DNA from: Paragordius varius
Lineage: Eukaryota > Animalia > Nematomorpha
Length of the DNA: 64,000 nucleotides
Assembly: GCA_964247055.1 (NCBI GenBank)
Contig: OZ176051.1
Span: 1,178,001 to 1,242,000, forward strand
Direction: 5' to 3'
Part shown: one piece after another, positions 1 through 44,900 of the stretch
Layout of the letters: each line of letters starts with the position of its first letter
How positions within the stretch are numbered: position 1 is the first letter of the stretch
Position numbers and translations under genes: made by a program
The notes under the pieces: generated by a model
What the model was told of the DNA's origin: nothing
Database searches by the model: none
What the model saw: the letters and a program-made list of their open reading frames with translations, nothing else

Positions 1-1716
1 TACAGTTTATAACCCTAAGGGAATTAATAAAAGCGATGAAAATTTTTAAAAACCACACTGATGTTTATAGTTAAACAAAATAGAGAAAAATGTTTTAATA
101 GTAATTTACATTCTTAATAAATCACCTAAATATTGAGGAATATGTTTAAGATGTAAAACCGCTTGTCCTTTAATCAATCCACTTTTGCCTTTTGAGGATT
201 TATGTTTCAAAAGGGATTTATTGATTTCTTTTCCTGGAAAAAATTCCTTCTTCAGTCGTTCATTATTCAATATTTCTGCTTTAATTTCGTTTATTCGGGT
301 TTCTTTGATCAGAATACGTGTTATTGATTTATAAACGTCATCACAACGATAACTAAAATATTATTTATTATGAAAATACCTAAATAGATGCATCTGTTCT
401 TTGGGCCAAAGAAATTCTTTTATAACGTGAAAATTATTGACAGATTTGCGCCCAGGATTAAAATGCATTTCACATTTATCTAAACAAACAGTTTCTTCGG
501 GTTTAACAAATGATATGGCGTTTCCGTGATTGAATGCACGGGCAGTCCTACCCACTCGATGGATATAAGAACGTTTTGTGACAGGGAAATCAAAATTAAC
601 AACATTGCAAATCTTTTGAAAATCTAAACCTCGACTGGCATGAAACTCGTCTGACTTCGCACTTTTCATGAAACTATCGTCTGCTGCTATCACGTAATCA
701 AACAGGCCCTGATTAAATTGGGTTAAAACATTAACTCTCGATAAAAGGGGCATTTCCCAATTTAGCAAGCAGCAATTGATGCCAAACAATTCCAAAAAAA
801 GTTTTAATCTATATTGATAATATTATTTTACTTGTAGCACTTTTCAATGTTGTTAACGTAAAATAGCGTTTTGCCTTTCAACAAACCAAGTTTTAACAAT
901 ATATAAGCTATTGTAAATTTTTCCTGATCGTTTTCCACTCTATAAACTTGTACATAATATAACATACTTGATAAGATATTGATTCAATTGAGGAATTGAG
1001 GTATCTAATTTATTTTGTATTAACAACTAAAGTAAAAAAATAACTTACGGGGTTATTAATCGTGTTTTGGAGAATTTTGATATTTTTATTTATCGTTGCC
1101 GATAATAAAATTAATTGAGAATTGACGAAGCGTCTAAAATTAACCAATGAATAAACTTTAAAATCAAGAATATATCTTTTTTATATCCGAACGAAAACAA
1201 TAAATCAGCCTCATCAAAAACCACGATATCAAAATGGACATCAAATGGCTTTTTAGCAATATGAGGGGGAGTGGAGATTATTATATTGGCCATTACATTA
1301 TTATTATTGTGGTCAAAAATTTCGCAAGTAATATCATTACAATAATTAAGTAATTTCTCTGTTTAAAATAATTATTAATACCTTTATAATTTGATATATT
1401 TGAATTGATAAGTCCGAAGATGGTACGATAATTAAGGCTTTATACTATTAATATATAATATAGATTTACATTTTTATTTTCAATAATGTTTTGGATTATA
1501 GGTAATATAAAGGCTCCAGTTTTCCCAGAACCGGTTGCTGCTTTAATAATCAAATTCTTCCCTACACTAATTTTATTTATGGCATTTTTCTGAATTTCTG
1601 TGGGTTTTCTCCAACCAAGTTTCGATATACCCTATCACATATACACATATAGATATAACTTTTAATAAGGAATCGTTAAATCCGAATTCACAAAAATTAC
1701 TGGGGTTACAATTCAT
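1..1716 (-). CDS. DDX56: DEAD-box RNA helicase DDX56/DBP9 (60S biogenesis). Exons 1716-1660, 1631-1470, 1444-1382, 1356-1157, 1133-1049, 1026-968, 939-832, 808-380, 352-126; 3' end uncertain or outside the window
   Basis: Spliced translation gives LLKGISKLGWRKPTEIQ, AATGSGKT, VVFDEADLLFSFG, LLSAT, KFTIAYILLKLGLLKGKTLFYVN, YIHRVGRTARA and SYRCDDVYKSIT, matching DDX56 subfamily motifs. Frame is preserved across GT-AG introns of 28, 25, 25, 23, 22, 28, 23 and 27 nt. Confidence 0.93.
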
Positions 1717-4080: not shown

Positions 4081-6806
4081 CAGGGGTGGCCAACGAGGTG
4101 ACCGCGGTCACTTTCGTGACCGCGACAACTCAAAAAGTGACCGCCTGAAAATATTTTTTTTAAAAAAATTTTATTGATTTTTTTCGGATAGTTGGCTACT
4201 TCTGAGCGAATTTAAATTTAAAATACAAAAAAATACGGTTTAAATTAAAAAAAACGTCTAAGAAAAGGGTGTAAAAAAATTATTTTATTAATTATAATTC
4301 ATATGTTTTGGAGCATTTGCATTAAAACTTAAAATCAGTCATTTCCCTTGAATATATCAAAACTTTGAGCAAAGCTTATTCATAAATCAGAAGCATAATC
4401 GTGAAGTTAGATTTGATTTGATACACCAAAAGTAGGTTTTTAAAACTTATATTTTAGAATGAGCCAAAAAAAGTTGTACAGATACAAGAAAGATTGGGAG
4501 CATGAATACTTTTTTATTATGATAAATGAAACATGCACCTGTCTAATATGCAATAGTACTGTTGCTTTGCCCAAAAAGTCAAATATTGAAAGACATTATA
4601 GATCTCTGCATCCACATTACTCCAAAAACTACCTCTTACAAACTCAAGAACGCAACATTAAAGTAAAATTAAAAGAACAATTATCCGCCTCACAAAATAG
4701 CATACTTAAATACAACAAAGACTATAAAAATGCTACGATTGCTTCATTCAAGGTAGCGGAAATACTCATTCGGAACAATAAGCCATTCCAAGATGGTGAA
4801 ATATTTAAAGAAGCCTTTATTAGCGCTTGTGATATTTTATTTGAAAATTTTGATAACAAAAATAATATTATGACAGCTATTAAAAGCATAAGCTTATCGA
4901 GAAATACCGTTATGCGCAGGGCTGAAAATATTAGTAATAATCTTGATGAAATTTTACATGAAAATATTAATAACTGTATTTTTTTTCCTTGCAACTCGAT
5001 GAGTCTACCGATTATGTTGGAATCGCCCAATTATGCATTTTTATTCGTATGATATTTAGTGATTTATCTGCAAAGGAGGAATTATTAACTATAATACCTC
5101 TCCACGAACGAACCAGAGGGCAGGATATTTTTGATTCTTTTTATAAATTTATCACAGATACGAAACTTCCCATCGTAAAACTCGCATCTATAACTACTGA
5201 TGGAGCTCCAGCTATGATTGGCGTTAACAACGGCTTTATCGCTTTATGTAAAAATCACAGTGCATTTCCCAAGTTCATTGATTACCATTGTATAATCCAT
5301 AATCAAGTTTTATGTTCAAAAGTTTAAAAATACCATCATGCAATGAACCCCTGTTTTAAAATTGTTAACGCCATTCGAACAAAAAGCTTGTCCCGCCGCC
5401 AATTTCGAATTTTGTTAAATGAGTGCGGCGTGGAATATGGAGAACTTTTATTACATACTGATGTAAGGTGGTTGAGTCGTGCCGCATTTTTAATTAGATT
5501 TAGGCAACTTTTACCACAAATAGAAATTTTTTTAGAGAAATTCTAAATTTTCATACCCTGAATTGAAAGATCAAGATTGGCTGCTTGATCTTGCATTTTT
5601 ATGCGATATCACGAAAAAATTGCATAAATTAAACATCCGATTACAAGGAAAAGATAAAACAATAATGGATATGATGGGTGCTTTAAAATCTTTTAAGGAA
5701 ACACTAACAGTAGTAGAAACACAATTAAAAAACCGAGATTTAAAACATTTTTTTAATCTGGCAGCGGTGTCTGAAAAAATAGAGAATCTCTCTTTTGAAA
5801 AATATGCAGATGATATTGGTCTGCTTATTAATGATTTTGAAAAACGATTTTCATCTATAAATAAACTTGAAGACATCGCTATTTTTTTATCATGCCCATT
5901 TAATAATAATAATAATGTTGAATATATTGCTCAAAAACTCAGCCACTTTCTTGGTGTACCAAATTTAGCAGAGTTGGAAGAGGAAATGTTAAATGCGAAA
6001 TCCATCTAAAATCATTAGGATCAGATATTATATATAAATTTATAAATAAAGATAAATACCCCATTTGGAAAACCGCTGCATTATTCAATTCTTTTTTTGG
6101 ATCCACATATTTATGTGAATCGGCTTTTTCAATTATGAATGCTATCAAAACTAAACAGAGGTCACAATTAACTAATAAACATTTAGAATCATGTTTGAGA
6201 ATTGCTTTGACTTCATTTGAACCTAATTTAGATAAACTTTCTGATTTTTTTCGCAGTCGGGCGTTTTAAATATTTTTTTCTTTATTAAATATGGATGTTT
6301 ATCGAGTTGTATTTTCGCTTAGGAAAAAGCCGATTTACTAAAAAATATGTGGATAGAATTAAAACTGATACAATTTTAATGTACTCTTATTTATGTTCAA
6401 ATTATGGTTCTAAATTGGAATGCTATTTTTTATTTCTTTTATTTTTTGTATCATAATGTATTCTCCCCTGTAATTTCAAATGCATTGTTTAAATTTTTAT
6501 ATTGTAAAATTTCATATAATAGAAATTTAATAAATAAATATTTTGAAGTGTTTTATGTTGGTTAAAAAATTAAGGTAGTTAATAACCCGTTGTCTTTTAA
6601 TTAAAATTATTTTTGTATTTGGTTGATAGATAAAAAAATTACAATTTTAAAATGGTTTAAACAAGTCACTCTAATAAGCAGGTATATACATCATTTAAAG
6701 TGTTGATTGAGTTTTTTTGATAAATATTTCTGGGTGACCGCGAACTCTTTTTTTAACAAAAAAGCCAAAAAAAAAGCTCGCGACAAAAAAAGTGTGGCCA
6801 CCCCTG
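4081..6806 (+). mobile_element. Full-length hAT DNA transposon (Buster/SPIN/GTF2IRD2-like), 2726 bp
   Basis: TIR CAGGGGTGGCCA / TGGCCACCCCTG. Perfect 8-bp TSD ATATATAA (4073-4080, 6807-6814). Subterminal GTGACCGC repeats. Internal transposase. Confidence 0.95.
4459..6269 (+). pseudogene. hAT transposase, frameshifted as assembled
   Basis: Zn-finger start (WEHEYFF..CLICNSTVALPKKSNIERHY), QLDESTD, SITTDGAPAMIG, YHCIIHNQVLC, LHTDVRWLSR, DLAFLCDIT..LNIRLQG and dimerisation motif FFGSTYLCESAFS. Frame breaks near 4985, 5325, 5545 and 6000-6045. Confidence 0.92.
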
Positions 6807-23079: not shown

Positions 23080-23513
23080 TTAAAATATTTTGGAAAATGG
23101 CGGCAAATAAGTTTGAGGAGTATTTTTTTACAATTTCTAAATTTTTGAATAATACTAAAAAAAGCATATTTTTAAATTCGGCTTAATTGAAATACTCTTT
23201 TTAAGATATTCGTATTTCACGCCGCTCTGGAATATAAAACTTTACCAAAAGATAATGGAGTTAAATAGCTCATGAAAGTACAAAAACGCTCTGCTAATAA
23301 ATGACGCCAAAGTTTGATGTTTTCATTCTAAAATTAAAGGTAAATTTTGAAACAGCCTTCTTATAATTTATATTTTTATGAAGTCCTTGGTTGTGTCAAC
23401 ATCTTTAGTGAGCGGTATATTATTTATTTTATATGAGAACATATTTTAATCCTTTTATATCGAATAATGGTATACCAAGTTGAATATTTAGTTGTGCATA
23501 CAAAAGTGTTACC

Positions 23514-26500
23514 ATGCTGAATTGCAAGTGGTACGATGGTTTAAATTTTGAAAACTTAAAATTTACTAAAAGTGATTTAGCAGTTTCTAAGGTTAATGTC
23601 CAAAATTTATTTGAATATGCTCAAAAGTGTTATGATCACGGATCTCAAAAAGTTATGAAAGGTAGTTTTATATAAAAATGTTTTAGATGATAAAGATAAC
23701 CGCTTTAAAAAATTTCTAAGCCATGGAACATATTCTGATAAACTTTCAACTTACATGATCTTGATACAGGATTATGGGTTGTATAGCTTATTGTATTTGT
23801 TGGAGTTATCAGGTATTTGATTAAATTTTACAGTAAGAATCTATTCAAGTGGGTAACCGTCGATTACTAACTAATCACCTTCAATCAATATGTGAGTTAT
23901 TTATTTCCAATGTAATGCCAAAATACAGAAAACTTAAACACTTTATTACACAACCATTTTTGCCTTTTCTTTGCGAATACTTTACTGCAAATCACAAAAA
24001 TCTTAAAAACAATTATGACTTTGATTTAATGGTAAAAGTTACATCGTTAACCTCATTAAACACCGACCGATTTAAATATATATTGGCAAACATCTATTTT
24101 GAGCATGTATTAAAAGTAGATGTTTATTTGCCATTTATCCAAAAAATAATCGCGTTAACAGAGGATCCCGTTAAAAACATTCAGTTTATTGCAATAAAAA
24201 CACTGTCCACATTGTTAATAAATATCCCAGAAAATGAAATATTAATTATGGAGGCGTTGGTAAATAAACTTACATATCCTGACACCCAAGTGTTTGGTTT
24301 AACATCATCGTGTCTTTCCAACATATTAGCATTTCATCCAAACATAATTTATTACCTGTTTGAGCAACTAAAAACGTTAATAAATACTAAAATATTGCGA
24401 TTAGTTTGCAGAAAATCGTCCATCTTAACAGCACCTTCTAAAACTAAAGATATGAAATCGGACCCAAAAATGATTCGCAGACGAAAAATAAGTAAGAAAG
24501 AAACAAGCAATCAAAATAAATTGGAAAGAAAATTCAATAAATACGATCAAATTTTTGTGAGCCTTATAACATTTCTCCGTAAATGTTTGACGAATTATTT
24601 TTTCAGAGTTAAAAAATCTAGCATTTCAACATTGAACAAGGAATTGGAAAATAAATTTACTTCGGAAGTTCTTGAATTTTACTTTTCGCTATTTCAAGTA
24701 TTATTAAGATTATTGTTAAAATTTTACAATTTTTATTTATTCGAATTCTCTATTAAACATTTCAATTTCACCTTTTATATATCTGTGCTAAAAACACTTA
24801 ATATAAGTTTTTATAAAACATTTTTTTGTTTTTACTTCTAGATAATTAGTTAAATTTGATCTAATACTTAACATTTGAATTAAGCTATTTAAAATTTTTT
24901 AAAACTACTTCCAGAACAAATATTAAAATATATTAGACACTCAAACTATTAAGTGAATTTGAAGTGTTTATGGGTGAATTGAATTGTTCCAAGGTTATCT
25001 AATGTAAATGGTATTTAATTATCATGGGCATATACTTATATATTTTATCATATTCGGTTTTTATTTTTTATAATTGGTTAATATAGCCTCTTGATTTATA
25101 AATAAATCCTCATCCTAATATTTTTTAATATTAGGCTTTATTTTTACGCATGTTAGCAATTTGTTTTAGCATTCAATAATATTAAAAAAAAAACAAGCCC
25201 TTTAATGGTATTATAACATTTTATTTAAAAATTTTAAACAATAATTTAGCAATTAGCGCCTCATCACGAATACCTTTCTCCAAAAATACTAAATTCAATT
25301 TTTTTGGGAATCAATAAACTCGCCCCAAATCTTAAAGTTGAAGGCGTGAGCAGTTCTTTGTCACAAGAAATCGATACATTGTTTGCTTTGGCCGACAAAA
25401 GCAATTTAAAAACAAGTAAATTGGGGGTTTTTCACCATATTATGCTAAATAAAACTTTTTTGGTGAGAGTTATAAATATAATTAATATATATCATAAACT
25501 ATAGTAAAAAGCAAAACAATATTTTTATTATATTTCAATATTTTTATTTGTGCTTGAGAGTTCCAAATTTTCGTCTCCTCTAAAATGGACGATCTTAAAC
25601 GCAATGCCGATTTTGCAATGAGAATTTATAATATATTTTATACTATGTAATAAAATATTTTTTAGATATTTCATACTTTGTTTTGGATTAAATTTTTCAC
25701 TTGAAGCCTATTTTAGGGTCTTTTGGAGCCAAGTGAATACGGTAAAAAACCGATGAAGGTGAACATTATCGCCTCAGAATTTTGAGTGAAATATTTTTTC
25801 CTTTTTAAATTTATAAATATTTAAAACGTATTTTTTACGAAAATTTTACTTATATTAGTAAATGAACCAAAATTTTAATCAATATTCGCAGGTTATAGAA
25901 ATGGCTGTAAGTGTTTATATGCCGTTTTCTTTCTCTCTCTCTCATACCATAAAAACGCTTCGACAAAATTTTACAAAAGATTTTTTTTATATAAAGTAGC
26001 ATTTTTTAAAATTTTCTTGATGCCATAATTTATCACAAATATTTTATCGCTAGATCTCCTTGTTTAAGAGAACTTGTCCATTTTAGAAGGGGCTTAAAAT
26101 CTAAGACTTTCGATTTAAATAATTAAACTTTATAAAGTGTTGTTTTCTTTTTAATATTGTTTATGGATATTTTTTGAATAACCGTTTTGCTTCCATCAAA
26201 ATATTTAAGCGTAATGTGCGCAAATACTATTTTTTATATGAACCAACTCTTCTTAAATGACATCCCATAGACAAAAGCACCATGAGGATACTGATGCATT
26301 TTTCTTTCTATTTCTTATGCACTTTTAAATATTAAGTACTAGTTTAAAGATATTTGAAAGTGAATATATTCATTTTTGCAGTTTTGATTTATCGTGGCTT
26401 AAAAATACCAAAAACAAAGTAGTTTGTGGGATTTGAGCATCTTTAAACGAATATTTTAGATAAGCGCTCTAGGAAAGGGGTAAATTAAAAATAATTAATT

Positions 26501-28026
26501 TTAGTGTCTTACTTTATCGGCAACGTTCATTTAAAAAACTCATTATAAGAGAAACTAATTTATTACATACAACAAAATAATTTATTATTTATATTTTCCC
26601 ATTAGAATTCCAAATTCTTCATTTTATCCACCAAATATTTGTGGGACCCCAAATGATTTCTCTTAAATCTGATATTTTGATTGAGGGTGAACAATCAATT
26701 TCCACCAAATTTTTTGAAAAACTGTACGCCGTACTTAATAATGAACCAACTTTCTTTCACTCACAAAGTTGTAGCAAATTCATTAAACTTATTCACACTT
26801 GTCTCACACATGATGAGAACATTGACAGGATACGGGTAACGTTTTTTTTGCGCAGGGTATTTTAAATTTGTTTTTTGTCAAAATTTCTTTTATCGGCCAT
26901 TTTAATATATGTTATTGTAAATGATCAATATTTTCGCTTTTTTCATCAGTTGACAATAAACACTTAAATCATTTAAATAATTATATTGTGGCATTGAAAA
27001 AACTTTAATACGATAGTTTTAATTTACACGAGTCTATTAAAACAAAATTAAACGTTAAAAAGTTTTGCCCACACAACAAATTATCTAGTAAACTTAAACA
27101 TTTTATTTTTATTAACACACCATGTTACAGAAATTCGTTTACACCCTACTTGACAAGAGTTTAAATCTCACATCAGTCGAATATACAATCGAATGTATTC
27201 AATGCGCATTCCATATAATGTACACTCTACAGCATGATAAAGGTATTTCTTTGCTACTACCAACATCAGATATCCCCGTTGAATTGCATGGCGAGGAGCA
27301 AAATAAAACAGGTCAGAGAAGAAAATTTAGTAAAATCATTGACCCTTTTAACATTGGGGCACAAATTAAGAGTTCTGTCCCGCGAGAAAAAAAGCGAATA
27401 AAGCCAAACGAAATGAAAGCTAATGATTATCAAGATACAGCTTACATGTCTGAATCGGGACAGTTTTATCAAATTTATGCGGTGAGTTATTATGTCAAAA
27501 ACGATATTTCAATTAAAATTATTTAAATAAACAATATGTTTAACTAATGTCAAAAACTTTTACCAATCCATTTGAAAAGGCAGTTAATTCATATTTTTTA
27601 ATAAACAAAAAGCAATAATTTTTTATACAGTTTGTAAATCAATATTTGACACAAGCAATTAATTAATTCGAAATTTAAGATTTTTACACCATATACATGT
27701 GATACATAAAAATTAATCTTTTTTTTCTTTTTCAAAATATTTGATAATAGTTAATGGACCATTATCACCCGACAGTTTCTTTAATTGCACGCAATTTTGT
27801 GGAAGGACGTCCTCCCATTTTACTTGTTTCAACAAGGACAGCAGCTGATGGCAAGAAAAATTATAATAATAATAACAAAAGTATAAAAGCAGAAACTATA
27901 CTTAATTCAGAAAACAATCCAGATTTGCGGGCTAAAAATCCATATTCTTTAGCGCACTTTTTGGAAGGTTTTATTAGAAAAAAACCAAAAATTGATTGTG
28001 ATATATTACGCTTTCCTGTACAATAA
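23514..28026 (+). CDS. CEBPZ: CEBPZ/NOC1/MAK21 (CBF domain, 60S biogenesis). Exons ~23514-23661, 23687-23812, 23838-24697, 25250-25415, 26606-26835, 27131-27481, 27751-28026; true start uncertain
   Basis: KWYD, HGTYSDKL..MILIQD, VMPKYRKLKHF, LVNKLTYPDTQV..LSNILAFHPN, ILNSIFLGINK..QEIDTLF, KFVYTLLD, DHYHPTVSLIARN and LAHFLEGFIRKKPK match NOC1-family motifs in order. Frame is consistent across splices. Confidence 0.9.
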
Positions 28027-28266: not shown

Positions 28267-29711
28267 TTAATGTGGATGATCTCTGCTAAATAAAAGATCC
28301 AAGGGGTCACCAAAAAAAGCTTGGCTAGAAAAATCGGTTTCATTCGAGGAAAAATTTGGGCCCTGAATATTGTTATCATGATGATTTAAACCAATTGTAT
28401 TGGTAGTGTCAGAGTCTGTTGAGAAAAATGCGTTGGAATTAATACTAATATCATAATAATTTCCTGTTTCAAACATTTTATCATCTGGTAGGGCAAAATT
28501 GGTATGTTGTGTTTGTTGAGCAACTTTTGTCGTTTCATAAAGGGATGCAGGGACAGATGTGTTGTTGGAAAAGAAATCTAAAAGAGGATTTATATTTGGT
28601 GTCATATCGTTATTTTCGGTTTTGGCAGTGCTAATTTCACCATTAATTTGTGTTTCAGGAATATTATGTATATGGATAGACGATGTGATAATTGGTTGAG
28701 TATTTTTATGTTGTTGAGAGGTATTATTTGTGTGAGGAACACATCTTTCCAAAACAACCCTGACATCATTCGACTTCGCAGCCTTTTTCAATATTTCTTC
28801 TTCGTCTGCTTTAATGTTTTTGGGGTCAATGTAATTATCGTCGTGAGTGAATCGCTCATAAGGTACAAGGAGTGGACAAACACATTCTAAAGCCAACCTG
28901 ATATTGTTAATACTGGGTGCTGGATAAAATGATTGAAAATGATATTAATAATGCTCGTTTATCCAAATTAACGCTTTAAGAATATACAACCCAATAACTT
29001 TTTATGGTTAAATTTTTAAAATGGGTTTTATAGAATGCAAATATGTAAAAAAGATTACATGATATTAAGGTTAACCCATTTACCTGTTATGGTTAAGCTG
29101 CCCGTAGAAAATATTTTTAGGGTTGCTTTGGGATCTTTGAGTGGATATGTGACTCCCGGATGCAATTCGGGTTCATAACTAAAATATTATGTATAAGATT
29201 TATAATATATATATGTTTTAAAAATATATGTAAAAACCTAGCCTGAGGTTTATGATCGTTTGCAAATTGAGTTATTTTGAGAGGAAATGGGAGTTGGGTT
29301 GTGGCCAAAACATTGACAACTCGAAAATTACAAAACCTGATGGCGAAACCCAAATTTTGTAAAATTCTGGCGACTCGTCGGCAAGCAATTTTAGCGTTTT
29401 CCTCACTTAAAAAAGTTTTATTTTATATAAACCTCGTTGCTCCAGTTACAACCACCTTTCCTGACGACCATATAGTTGCAGTACAATAAGGCTTACGGAG
29501 TTTCATATAAACTAACTTAAAATATAAAAATCGTTACTCCGTATTCCTTTCTAAGCTCTACATTTTTTCCTTCTAAAGCTATTTTCCGAATGTTTAAATG
29601 ACATTTAGTTGTAAATGCAGAAACAACATTACTGACATAAACGGGTAAAGAAAAATTAAGTAGAGTAACCGTGAATGTGGCTTGAGAGTCGGTTAAACAA
29701 TTTATGCTCAT
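28267..29711 (-). CDS. TBPL1: TBP-related factor 2 (TRF2/TLF). Exons 29711-29538, 29515-29433, 29405-29238, 29178-29084, 28919-28267
   Basis: SNVVSAFTTKCHLNIRKIALEG, MKLRKPYCTATIWSSGK, NFRVVNVLA, SYEPELHPGVTY and ATLKIFSTGSLTITAP are TRF2-type rather than TBP-type. Introns are 22, 27, 59 and 164 nt. Confidence 0.93.
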
Positions 29712-38900: not shown

Positions 38901-41900
38901 GTTTTATACGACGTCATAGTAGGTTCCTTTATTATGAAAAATAAATTAAAATTGGCCATTTAAGTGATAGTTTTTATTTCACAGTCGAAAACAAAATTAT
39001 CAAAACGTACCGTTTCCAATGTTTCTATTAATCGTTGAAGAGTGAATGAAAGTTCCTTACCAATATCAATCTTTGGGTTTTTAGCATGTAATAAACCAAA
39101 ATCACCGGATGTCTAGAGTTGGTTAAAATTAAATAAAAAATAAAAAACTATTGCTAACAATAAAATATATTTTATGAGAAAGGAGATATACTTTAAAGAA
39201 TGGCGGTTGCAAAACATGGGATAATTCTGACGAAGCTGTTTCCTGGGAAGATATTTTATGCAAAAATAATTTCATGGTTGAACTTTCTCGTTCAACGAAA
39301 TAATTCATGAAAGTCATATAATGTTCCTTTCCACCGAATCTATGAAATCAAGAATTAATTGAGTTTTAATGCATAAATTTGTTAAAAAAATATTTTTATT
39401 TTACTTGTTAGAATTTGCCAGAGTTTGAATAGTTTTAGCAATGAGAGTGAGATTTCGGGCAGGAACATCCCCAGGATATTGTTGGCACAAACCAAAGAGA
39501 CTGGGCGATAGGATGGCAGGACAGAGAAAACGCAAAAAGATGGAAGCACTGATAACATTAGCACTCATTTCTGGTTTATAACCAAGCGAGGTGAGTCTTT
39601 CCCGTATAGAATGGAATACGCGCTTCAGTGATCTGCAATAATTTTGGATTTTAAAGAAAAAATTGATTAAAGATCGAAAAAATTATAATAAAATGATGAT
39701 CAATCATACTTTGGGAAATAGGCGTAAGAATTGACAATACTTCGCCAACACATTTCACAGTAAAGCATTAAGTTTTGTTGATTACGAAATAGTAAATGTT
39801 GGGCATTAGTTGAATTGTAATCTGCGGAGCCTATACAACAATCCACAAAAATATTTGATTTTCATCCACGAAAATAAAATTACTAAAAAGAAAAAAATAT
39901 TATATAAAGTGATATATTTATGCCTAATTTATGAGTTTGATTTTTGTCCAAAATATTTAAACGTTGAGAAAACGATGCCTACAAGAGAATATTTTCCAAG
40001 AAATATATACCAAATTTTAGTCGAGCTGGATCAACTTCACAATTATCGCCGGCATCAAGGACAACCCTAATGAAATGGGCGAGGGTTTGGCCCAAATAAT
40101 CCTTCCCACAAAATTTCATGTAAGCCTCAACCGCTTTGGTAGCAAGTGAATTGCCGCGAAATGTCAGATTCTCATTTTCTAATTATTATTATTATTAAAT
40201 AAAGTTTATCATAATATCAAATACCATTATACGCATTTAAAAATATATATTTCAATGCAAAAGAAATTCACCAATTTTTTCAATCTCCATTTCTACCAGC
40301 TTGGTTAGAAATGTTTCAGCCATATCGAAATTCTCAAAGATATTAACAAGTGAAGCTGATAAATCTTCTTTGGCTTTTATGGAAATGCATGATTCCAAGT
40401 ATTGGCAAATTGAGGGGTAGTCGTCCAATAATAGCTAAAAAAGCAATTAGAATGTTTATTATACGGTAAAAAATATTATTATATAGACAAAATGAAATAT
40501 AAAGAACAACTTTTTTTTGAAAACATTTAACTTGTTTTTTATAAATATAAGTTGCTGTTTTATGGTGGTGGTCTACTCCGTATAATTTAAATTTTTAGTG
40601 TTTGTTAAAGATTAAATATTATTGAACATTTAGAAAAAGTCAAAAACATTGTGTAATATTTTTAATGTCTATTCAAATATTGGGACAAATTTTTACTTGT
40701 AAGAAATCACTGTACATGGCAAGTGGGAGAATATTGAAGGTTTGATAACGTGCTTTTATACGAATACTGCAAGTATTTTGTTGTTGATGGTTCCCTGTAT
40801 TTTTGTATTTGGGGAAAGATGGAAAGAAAAGCAATTTCTTGGGTGAAATTTCTTCAAGAGGTGGAGTCAGACTCAAACCATAAGCCGAAGTGCTCATAAG
40901 ATTAGGATTATTGCTTTTAGAAACGCCTAAAGACTGCTCATCACAACTTTTGATAGAATACCACGTTTCGTGGAATTGAGAACCAGTTATGGATTGTATA
41001 GGGATTCGTACACTGCCTACATTTTAAATGGGGATTAAAAAAACTTAACAAGAGAAAAATTAAAAATAATTATATTAGCATTACCAATAAAACGATGTTT
41101 GTTTGATGGCTTAGTTCCCAGATAGTTGGATAAGGAAGGTGTTGTAGTACATTCTCGTGTGTTCCCAAGCGAAAGAGAATGATTTATGTTAGCTTTATTT
41201 TTTGCCATTTTCCTATTTTTACTGGATCCCCATTTCAAGAAGGAATTGGTGGTGTTTGATTTATTTGAGTTTTCATTTTGTAAAAATCCGCGGAAAATTT
41301 TGACTGTCAACCAATTTACGGGCGGGAGATTCGTGAAATCAAACGTTTCCCCCCAAAAACATAAATCGCTTTTTGGTTTGGCTGATGTGCGTCCATAGAA
41401 ATGGTCATCGAGATAGATTTCACAGAAATAACTTTTTTTAGCTGGGATGCCTTTGGCCTCCAAAATCCAAATTTGTAAATTATTTTCTCGCCTAGCCATC
41501 ACATTTTTCCAGGGATCGAATGCATTTCTAAGGCTAAAAATAGTTTTTTATAAAATTATAATCGTAAGTATCAAAAGAAAACTTTCAATATGAATTATGG
41601 AAACATAACATATCTATAAAACGTAAATTTATATACCTGCCCAACCAGGTCAAATATTCCCCGTAAGAGTTGAAAGAATAAATAATGTCTTTATTGAGAG
41701 CAGGAATTTTATTTGGCAAAGCATGACAAGTTTGCATTTTAATGGAATATGGCGAAATAATTCGTTGGTCATCATTTGGTGTGGAAGAAAGGAGGAGTGA
41801 TTGGTGAATGGCATTGATATTATTGATTTTGACTTTATGATCATCACCATCTGTATGAATACTTTTTTGTTGCAAATAATGATATAAATCGCCAGTAGGA

Positions 41901-44900
41901 AAGTTTATACTGTGGTGCATTTGCAAAGGGAGTCGTTGGTTTAATCGCTTTTTGATAAATTTATTATTCTCATTTTCGGAATAGTGAATGTTTTGGTGGT
42001 TATTTAACTCAGAAGCAGGATTTTCAATGTTAAAATTATGGTGAAAGGATGGCGTTTCCAAGCCCTCACAATAGTTATTGGTAGTAAATGCTAAAAGACT
42101 GTTTCGTCTCATTTTGTGTTTGTCATCCGTATTCTCAGATAAACAATGATTGCTATTTTTCATGTAGGAAGGTAATAGATTCAACATTTTAAAACTGCTG
42201 TTATTGCTGTTGTTTTTTAATTTCTTGGAAGAATTATAAATTGTTGGATTCGGGGTAGGATTAGTTGTGTTATTCAATGTTTCGCTGTTAATAATGAAAG
42301 GAGTGGACAATTTAACACGATCCTCTGCCTTGATTATTGCTGGTGGGATAAATGTTTCCTTTTCTTGAATATTTGCACAATTTTTATGCGATTGTAAAGT
42401 ATTAAACTTTAGTGAATGGCTACTGTAATGATAATTAACAATTCCATTTCCATGTTGTTTCTTGCTGGCGTTTTGGCGAAAATGTTTGGTTTTTTTGAAA
42501 GGTTTCAACCAAGAATCTTGAGATGATTGGGTCCCAATCGGTCTGTGTGTTAAATATATAAAATAAGGACTTGTTTAAAATACAATATTGTTTATAGTTT
42601 TAATTACGAAAGGAATTAATACTAAGAGAGTCTTAAAAGACAATCGTGTTTTGAAAATATATTATTATTATAGTATATTGTTGTGCAATATTGAGTAATA
42701 AAGTGTTGTATTGAAGAGAAAAGATTAATAATATATCATAATATTTATTGAAAAGTTTAAAGAGTTGAGGAAATATAGATTATATGTGGAAAGAATCCGA
42801 TGGATTTAGAATTAAATTTTTTTAAAGTTATATTATAATGATAATATTTATTATACGATATATGATAAAATAAAGTATAAAATAAACAATGAGAACTCTC
42901 CTGCATGCTTAATACAATATTTACTTATAGATATATTTATAATTTTAAAATTACCTGTATATTTATTTTTCTATGTAATGATAAAAAATTAAAGCAAAAA
43001 ACAAGGTTGTGTGAGTTTTGATGTGACATTATATCGTATATATACATATATTTGAAAACTGATCCTTTCTTGATTAATTTCTTTTTTTGATAATTGACTT
43101 TGCATAAATTAATTGGCTATTTTTTGGGATAATAGCAAGCATATATAATCTTAGAGGAAATATATAATTAAAGTATAATCTATTTTCCCATCAAAATAAA
43201 TGGAGGAAATTGAGTTTAAAAGATCAAAAGTTTCAGATATGAATTACTTTAATCTTTTATACTTTTTAACCAAAAAAAATTTATCGTATGTTAAAGTTTG
43301 ACAACAAAATATTCAGTATTTTCTAAACAACTATCACAAAACAATAAATATAGGAAGTATCATATTATTAATATTATATATCTGTTGTATAGCGAAATTT
43401 TCAAAAGACAATGGGAATGATTAAATCTTGTAATACAATTATTTGTAATATAAAATAAATACAGTTGAAATGATAATATTTGTTGCCTCTATTGAAATTT
43501 TTCCTTAGTATATATATATAGAGGAAGGAAGTTGAATTACAAATTTTAAAATATAAACAAATTAATTTAATTGCTTTTGGCAGATGATTAAACATTGTTA
43601 AACATTTGGGGTTTTCAAACATTTGGGGTTTTCAAGTCATCTAAGAACGTTTTATTATTTATAAATTCCTTAGATATGAACGAATAAAAGTATAATCATC
43701 CTTAACCTCAAAAAATAAATTATTTTGATAAAAAATCGAAAATTAAATTATCTCTATTAACTCTTTTAAAGAGTTGACTTAATTTTCTTTGAACCTAAAT
43801 GTATATCTTTAATATAAATTAGCACCTAGTTGATAAGAAAAGGTTCAGATATACTTTATTTATCAAAATTTCAAAATTTTTACTTAATAACTATAAATTT
43901 TAATAAAGTAAGCAATTTTCAATTAGGAAATCATTTTTTTGAATTGAACATTGGTGCTATTTTTGTAACACTTTTTTTTGTAAAATGATAAATCATACTA
44001 TATAAGAGTGTCAATGACTCTCAAAAGAGATTATAAGAATATTCTAGAATGTGTTGAGCGCATATGTGTGATGTGATCTGATGTCAGGATGTGTAGATTA
44101 ATTAATTATTTAAATAGTTTGTATATAATCACTATTTTTGTGATTATATAGAAAAATTTTATAAATTCAATTTAATTTATTCTTCCTTTCTTCCTTCCTT
44201 CCTATGGAACAAAAAATTAAAGGTGCAAACACATTATTATTTATATTATCTAATATAATTTAATTAATTTAATTTTTTTTCTTTAAATAAACGGATTAAT
44301 AAGTCATGACTCTTGCATACTCCAATCATAAAATATATAATTATATTTTTATGCTTACTAAAAATTTTAATTTTGATAAAAATTTATTTTTGTTTTTTAT
44401 ACATTTAAAATAGCCAATATGTCTAACAAACAATAATTAAAGGCTTAAATAAAGTAAAAGGTCGCTTTAAAAAAGAAATAGGATAATATGTATATTAGGC
44501 AATAATTTATTTTCTGCAAAGTAAAAAAATGATTATCGATATTTTGTCAAGAAAATAAGATCAAAAGAATCAGTTTAAAGACAAATTTGCCGACACAAAA
44601 TGATAATGAGATAGATGCTTGAGAAAAAAGAGAGATTATAAACTCAACAAATAAAATAAATTAGTTTCAGGTTCAATTCAATGAAGTTAATTGTCGTATT
44701 TTTATATTAACTATAATCTTATCAAAGTATATCACCATTCATAATAAACTAAAGACATACTATTATGATGTTATAATTAAAAATCGATATAAGTACTTGT
44801 TAATAGTATTATCTTGTTGATGTCCTTGAAGAGAAGACAATATTTGAGAGTTAAAAAATGCCGTTTTTTCCATAGAATTTTCAATTTTGAAATTGAAATT

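Follow-up and report, generated by a model that had tools for sequence, protein, structure and literature searches.

Nematodes, the nearest well-studied relatives of hairworms, favor short introns in which the 3′ site is of a strong TTTCAG type and a branch-point consensus at a distance is lacking. The short introns of Caenorhabditis elegans have a mode of about 47 nt and a minimum of about 40 nt. According to a survey of September 2026, introns below 30 nt occur in just two animal lineages, the myxobolids and a dicyemid (PMC13644364). The median intron length is 27 nt in the myxobolid Henneguya salminicola and 22 nt in Thelohanellus kitauei and Myxobolus rasmusseni (Hadjez et al., 2026, PMC13644364), and sub-30-nt introns have been described in dicyemids (Lu et al., 2019, PMC6736024; Zverkov et al., 2019, PMC6543705). 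The initial annotation of the DNA analyzed here had stated that such introns are reported in very few animals, for example dicyemids; the rarity was borne out, but the list was incomplete, as the myxobolid myxozoans belong to it too (PMC13644364). Tiny introns are also found in ciliates, with about 25 nt in Paramecium and 15–16 nt in Stentor, as cited in the survey (PMC13644364).

The window, a stretch of 64,000 nt with a composition of about 28% GC, contained on its minus strand at 106–1716 a gene for a DDX56/Dbp9-type DEAD-box RNA helicase with nine exons and eight micro-introns. DDX56 is a ribosome-assembly helicase. Frame reconstruction gave a single spliced reading that starts with the ATG at 1716, comprises 469 codons, and ends with the TAA at 106–108. 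This frame was open only after the removal of eight GT-AG segments of 28, 25, 25, 23, 22, 28, 23, and 27 nt. The lengths and the span of 353–1659 previously assigned to these introns were thereby reproduced exactly. In the table-11 ORF listing, the locus was represented by fragments only. Judged from the sequence, the eight segments are, with a probability of roughly 0.88, genuine U2-type spliceosomal introns of nearly the minimum size, carried by the only DDX56 gene of a bilaterian that is most likely a horsehair worm (Nematomorpha).

The micro-introns of this presumed hairworm have about half the minimum length of nematode introns and, unlike those of C. elegans, have 3′ ends of the form (T/A)AG, before which a T tract is short or missing. 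Ciliate introns of comparable or even shorter length are handled by a canonical spliceosome, whereas the genome studied here differs from those of ciliates in its multi-Mb chromosomes, its animal mtDNA, its genes of animal type, and its use of TAA as a stop. Dicyema japonicum and other dicyemids share the sub-30-nt GT-AG introns, the reduced splice-site motifs, and the status of a parasitic bilaterian. However, the phylum differs (Spiralia for Dicyema as against the Ecdysozoa inferred here), and the mtDNA of the putative hairworm is one molecule of normal size that carries palindromes in coding genes. The resemblance to the myxobolids covers the length range, GT-AG borders, a 5′ site shortened to GTa, the lack of a real polypyrimidine tract, a canonical U2 snRNA, the probable presence of U2AF, and the clustering of short introns in the same genes (PMC13644364). 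Both lineages are also parasitic and AT-rich. In contrast, the myxobolids are cnidarians and the animal studied here is a bilaterian, and the median myxobolid intron is shorter than 30 nt, whereas many genes here have introns of hundreds of nt.

All eight introns of the DDX56 gene were located on the minus strand. Intron 1 (1632–1659, 28 nt, phase 0, GTT...TAG) interrupted the conserved Q-motif region, and was followed by intron 2 (1445–1469, 25 nt, phase 0, GTA...TAG) and intron 3 (1357–1381, 25 nt, phase 0, GTA...GAG). Between the DEAD and SAT motifs lay intron 4 (1134–1156, 23 nt, phase 2, GTT...TAG), and the shortest of the series was intron 5 (1027–1048, 22 nt, phase 0, GTAAGT...TTTAG). 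Intron 6 (940–967, 28 nt, phase 2, GTA...TAG) had a 16-nt GT-AG alternative that was also frame-restoring, and intron 7 (809–831, 23 nt, phase 2) split the peptide CYK|LKLFLE. Intron 8 (353–379, 27 nt, phase 2) had a length that is a multiple of three and carried an in-frame stop 16 nt past its donor. If any one of the eight introns were retained, a stop codon would follow within 84 nt. The GC content was 17.4% in the introns and 31.1% in the exons.

The homology searches were run with each exon separately, and the joined translation was computed solely for the frame check. The exons carried the Q motif, AATGSGKT, DEAD, SAT, and HRVGRTAR in the expected order. In Pfam, exon 2 matched positions 1–40 of the DEAD profile, exon 4 matched positions 94–141 of the same profile, and exon 8 matched Helicase_C. 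The exons thus tiled the DEAD and Helicase_C profiles, in agreement with the earlier claim that the introns are needed to restore the frame against conserved motifs. Exon 8 also aligned to solved DEAD-box helicase structures over motifs V and VI, and its named relatives were DDX56/DBP9 proteins with an identity of at most 47%. The C-terminal exon 9 aligned with the corresponding C-terminal part in other DDX56 genes. Collinearity was assessed against two contigs of other animals in Logan (L005 and L007), in which the whole DDX56 DEAD domain lies in a single unbroken frame. Exons 2, 3, 4, 5, and 7–9 aligned to them in order; the short exon 6 had no clear match in the two contigs and fitted the gap between exons 5 and 7.

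The exon 8 sequence occurred once in the 110.6-Mb assembly, which indicated a single-copy gene. Since there is only one copy, the interrupted DDX56 gene must encode the protein. This bears directly on the possibility that the locus is a decaying pseudogene, or that the interruptions are insertion errors of the assembly, so that the segments would never be removed at all. A decaying or misassembled locus fits poorly with catalytic motifs that are all intact, with stop-free exons, and with interruptions that are bounded by GT...AG in eight of eight cases and have lengths within a 7-nt range. The same pattern was moreover present in a second gene, TBPL1. To our knowledge, the errors of long-read assemblies are not AT-rich inserts of 22–28 nt with splice signals. 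We consider this explanation extremely unlikely.

The borders of the segments were examined in a junction test, in which all frame-restoring excisions of 15–60 nt with at most two codons trimmed per side were enumerated, amounting to 36–106 per junction. GT-AG was the only one of the 256 donor/acceptor dinucleotide pairs that solved all eight DDX56 junctions at this trimming, and the chance product for GT-AG at eight of eight junctions, calculated from per-junction probabilities with local dinucleotide frequencies, was about 6e-8. At a trimming of five codons, six further AT-rich dinucleotide pairs also reached eight of eight. The test therefore relies on the homology constraint, because looser trimming lets these six additional pairs pass.

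The same enumeration is relevant to the question of whether some of the introns are real but have other boundaries or form part of longer introns, in which case the lengths of 22–28 nt would be partly wrong. A minimum-intron path search did yield another open reading with GT-AG segments of 58 nt and 32 nt, and individual alternatives of 16 nt and 32 nt existed at junctions 6 and 7, respectively. However, the alternatives remove residues that are aligned with other DDX56 proteins: FSFGYKKD following DEAD, the segment of exon 6, and the CYK that precedes LKLFLE. When trimming was restricted to at most two codons, an alternative was retained at junction 6 alone. The open path through the 58-nt and 32-nt segments was rejected because it deletes residues that are aligned with other DDX56 proteins. 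Misplaced boundaries are accordingly an unlikely explanation.

Support for the assigned position of one intron came from other animals. The codon and phase of intron 7, which follows the second base of the lysine codon in CYK|LKLFLE, coincided with those of introns of 200, 222, and 250 nt in the DDX56 genes of three other animals, and a fourth contig had a GT donor directly after the same CYK codon. A spliceosomal intron at the orthologous position is difficult to reconcile with the idea that the segments are removed from somatic DNA, rather than from RNA, in the manner of the internal eliminated sequences of ciliates. Ciliate eliminated sequences are TA-bounded, and TA...TA and TT...TA pairs did restore the frame at seven of the eight junctions. 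Yet TA is simply frequent at 17% GC, whereas the much rarer GT-AG solved all eight. The genome also contained a full canonical set of spliceosomal snRNAs, and we know of no precise small-scale DNA elimination in this animal group. DNA elimination therefore has a next to negligible probability. Compared with the corresponding intron in other animals (L005:1581–1623), intron 8 (353–379) was shifted downstream by about 12 codons, an offset that could reflect intron sliding or an independent gain.

The second gene with introns of this class was a TBP-like factor (TBPL1-type) gene, whose 5′ part at 29085–29711 on the minus strand was identified in a genome search with the Pfam TBP profile. The gene contained introns of 22 nt (29516–29537), 27 nt (29406–29432), and 59 nt (29179–29237), all on the minus strand and all three with GT-AG borders. 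The 27-nt intron, a multiple of three in length, carried two in-frame TAA codons. Paramecium introns whose length is a multiple of three likewise carry stops, a feature shared by the multiple-of-three micro-introns of the presumed hairworm. The four exons matched positions 3–36, 41–66, 1–28, and 33–63 of the TBP profile, and exon 3 aligned with TBP structures of the PDB. The canonical TBP of the genome was encoded on a different contig. The 22-nt and 27-nt introns proposed earlier for TBPL1 were thus confirmed by reconstruction and by exons tiling the TBP profile. Together with those of DDX56, ten micro-introns in two genes (eight in DDX56 and two in TBPL1) were confirmed.

The two introns of 25 nt suggested for a CEBPZ/Mak21-type gene are plausible. 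This gene was partly contained in the window at 23484–26862 on the plus strand, with the Pfam CBF domain in the exon 26581–26862. GT-AG candidates of 25 nt each were indeed present on the plus strand at 23662–23686 and 23813–23837, where they join the upstream ORFs. Their backing is ORF continuity, and for 23662–23686 a 22-nt alternative exists. An eIF-1a-type gene on another chromosome, at C1:9296948–9297159, had 17 nt between the segments matching profile positions 1–39 and 37–63, which probably indicates a further micro-intron of about 17–26 nt. In the CCT genes, the contiguous profile segments were separated by gaps of 240–1100 nt and a few of 46–64 nt. The CCT gaps of 240–1100 nt and the 59-nt intron of TBPL1, occurring beside the micro-introns, suggest a mixed regime of intron sizes.

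Censuses independent of homology gave no usable histogram of intron lengths. In counts of ORF-joining GT..AG segments, GT-AG was not separable from decoy dinucleotide pairs, and the spectrum of GTA...TAG spacings over 264 kb showed no distinction from decoys. A dynamic-programming gene finder based on codon usage achieved no separation with either a long or a short maximum intron and missed DDX56 itself, and a dynamic programme based on ORF length did not separate GT-AG from decoys either. These censuses failed because the exons are short, the codon bias is weak, and an ORF is restored by nearly every excision whose length fits.

The ten confirmed micro-introns had reduced splice signals. Their 5′ ends were GTA in seven cases and GTT in three, with little further match to U1, and their 3′ ends were TAG (seven), AAG (two), and GAG (one). 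The run of T residues before the 3′ site comprised 0–7 T. A YTNAY motif was missing or located at a variable distance in the ten introns, in which A residues were plentiful. These splice signals correspond to those described for the myxobolids and Dicyema (PMC13644364). The argument that no room is left for a long polypyrimidine tract holds by simple arithmetic at 22–28 nt, with no more than 3–7 T before the AG. Five of the ten verified donors were preceded by A.

The initial annotation had also proposed a strongly modified spliceosome, and here the findings pointed the other way. The U2 snRNA retained the branch-point-binding GUAGUA, the U6 snRNA retained ACAGAGA and AGC, and a U1 snRNA of one type had the canonical 5′ end ACUUACCUG. 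The recognition cores of the snRNAs thus showed nothing unusual, a gene for SF1 was present in the genome, and a model of the U2AF large subunit was represented by four collinear exon matches on contig C8, from which U2AF65 is probably present. Because the same genome has CCT introns of 240–1100 nt, the 59-nt TBPL1 intron, and the micro-introns, one machinery must handle both sizes. These observations argue for a conventional spliceosome acting on minimal substrates rather than for a strongly modified one.

We infer that the DDX56 segments are excised from RNA, and the choice of the branch point and the intron-definition mode are conceived on the same basis. Each micro-intron would be recognized as a unit by an otherwise conventional spliceosome. 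U1 would pair with the reduced 5′ site (GTA or GTT), U2 would pair at one of the numerous A residues located a few bases before the (T/A)AG 3′ site, and the run of 0–7 T would substitute for the polypyrimidine tract. If any of the introns were retained, a premature stop would result.

Several further features of the snRNA genes were observed. At C6:604678–606419 (L021, L022), two full-length U1 types adjoined each other, with the 5′ ends ACUUACCUG and ACUUACUUG; the variant with ACUUACUUG would pair with A, not G, at the last exon base. The U2 snRNA gave 46 matches, in contrast to the one to seven copies reported for the myxobolids, and most of them lay in one degenerate cluster at C3:257000–530000 with scores between 178 and 38 bits. 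The cluster resembles an array in which U2 genes are mixed with decayed copies of them. A whole-genome search for the U12 snRNA returned no match, a result that does not by itself prove its absence, and the minor spliceosome may be absent from this animal, as it is from nematodes.

The lineage was assigned from the rest of the assembly, which comprised 110.6 Mb in 44 contigs with chromosomes of more than 10 Mb and 28% GC. The mtDNA was contained in contig C44 as a single molecule of 15,693 bp with 70% AT. It used a code with TGA for Trp and AGR for Ser and encoded a full set of about 22 tRNAs. Because of this mitochondrial code and tRNA set, the animal is a bilaterian and not a cnidarian. The mtDNA also contained palindromes with arms of 208, 140, 138, 131, 92, and 80 nt and a complementarity of 95–100%, for example at C44 5104–5519, 1431–1702, 1741–2021, and 6032–6293 (L012, L013), with a total extent of up to 416 nt. 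These palindromes overlapped the nad1 ORF (5421–6449, minus strand) and two other long ORFs. Long perfect inverted repeats within mitochondrial protein-coding genes are a peculiarity of Nematomorpha (PMC6649704). On this sequence hallmark mainly, the lineage is most likely Nematomorpha, with which the mtDNA size of about 15 kb and the AT-rich nuclear genome also agree. A derived, probably parasitic lineage had been predicted from the introns, and the mitochondrial hallmark agreed with this prediction by pointing to Nematomorpha, which are parasitoids (PMC6649704). An arthropod reading, suggested by the tRNA order K-D...G...A-N-S, was dropped after the palindrome test favored a hairworm. The COX1 fragment of the mtDNA had protein matches of at most 79% identity. 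At C44 6745–7451, a tandem array of units of about 72 nt was miscalled by tRNA finders.

It could be argued that the genome comes from the dicyemids or the myxobolid myxozoans, the two animal groups in which such introns have been documented before. In intron length, in a 5′ site reduced to GTA, and in low GC content, it does resemble Henneguya (29% GC) and Dicyema (PMC13644364, PMC6736024). However, the bilaterian mitochondrial code and the approximately 22 tRNAs exclude Cnidaria, and the single 15.7-kb mtDNA with coding palindromes corresponds to that of Nematomorpha (PMC6649704). The 18S rRNA had a length of just 1809 nt, and the myxozoan-specific primer sites (PMC4709930) were absent from it, with 3–8 mismatches. 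These primer sites, together with the mitochondrial code, led to the rejection of a myxozoan origin. As for the dicyemids, Dicyema has 36.7% GC and 67.5 Mb, compared with 28% GC and 110 Mb here. An origin from either group is very unlikely, and the assignment to Nematomorpha is preferred. The nuclear GC content of 28% is close to the 26.9% of Gordionus. The published hairworm genomes of four species have sizes of 200–300 Mb (10.1101/2024.06.11.598342), as against 110 Mb here, a difference that counts against the assignment, although size is not a defining character. At C2:1811658–1995730, at least 12 copies of the 18S gene were present at an irregular spacing of 9–46 kb.

Hairworms are not mentioned in the text of the survey of short introns (PMC13644364), and the word “intron” is absent from two hairworm genome preprints. 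Our literature search, which extended to sources other than the Current Biology hairworm genome paper, found no report joining Nematomorpha with short introns. On balance, we lean toward a third independent animal origin of sub-30-nt introns, located in Nematomorpha (Ecdysozoa) and not derived from genome compaction, in which the micro-introns would coexist gene by gene with introns of 55–70 nt and of kilobase size and the RNA core of the spliceosome would be unchanged. If this is true, a third lineage in another superphylum would mean that the animal spliceosome can reach the size limit repeatedly. A cell that splices both 22-nt and kilobase introns would also make the minimal geometry of 5′ splice site, branch point, and 3′ splice site directly testable. 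In practical terms, aligners and gene predictors with a minimum intron above about 20–30 nt will mis-annotate such genes, and completeness tests that bar introns below about 30 nt may break them. In that case, an annotation artefact could, as a speculation, account for some of the “rampant loss” of universal genes reported for hairworms.

Rfam and tRNA scans of the window returned nothing. A RasGAP gene occupied 39404–42574 on the minus strand, with a C2 domain at 41038–41502 and the RasGAP domain at 39404–39682, and its exons were much longer than those of DDX56. On the plus strand, the region 4459–6009 contained long ORFs, the first of which had a Spin-doc/ZBED-type zinc finger (Pfam zf-C2H2_12); these ORFs probably represent a transposase of the hAT type or a gene that descends from such a transposase.
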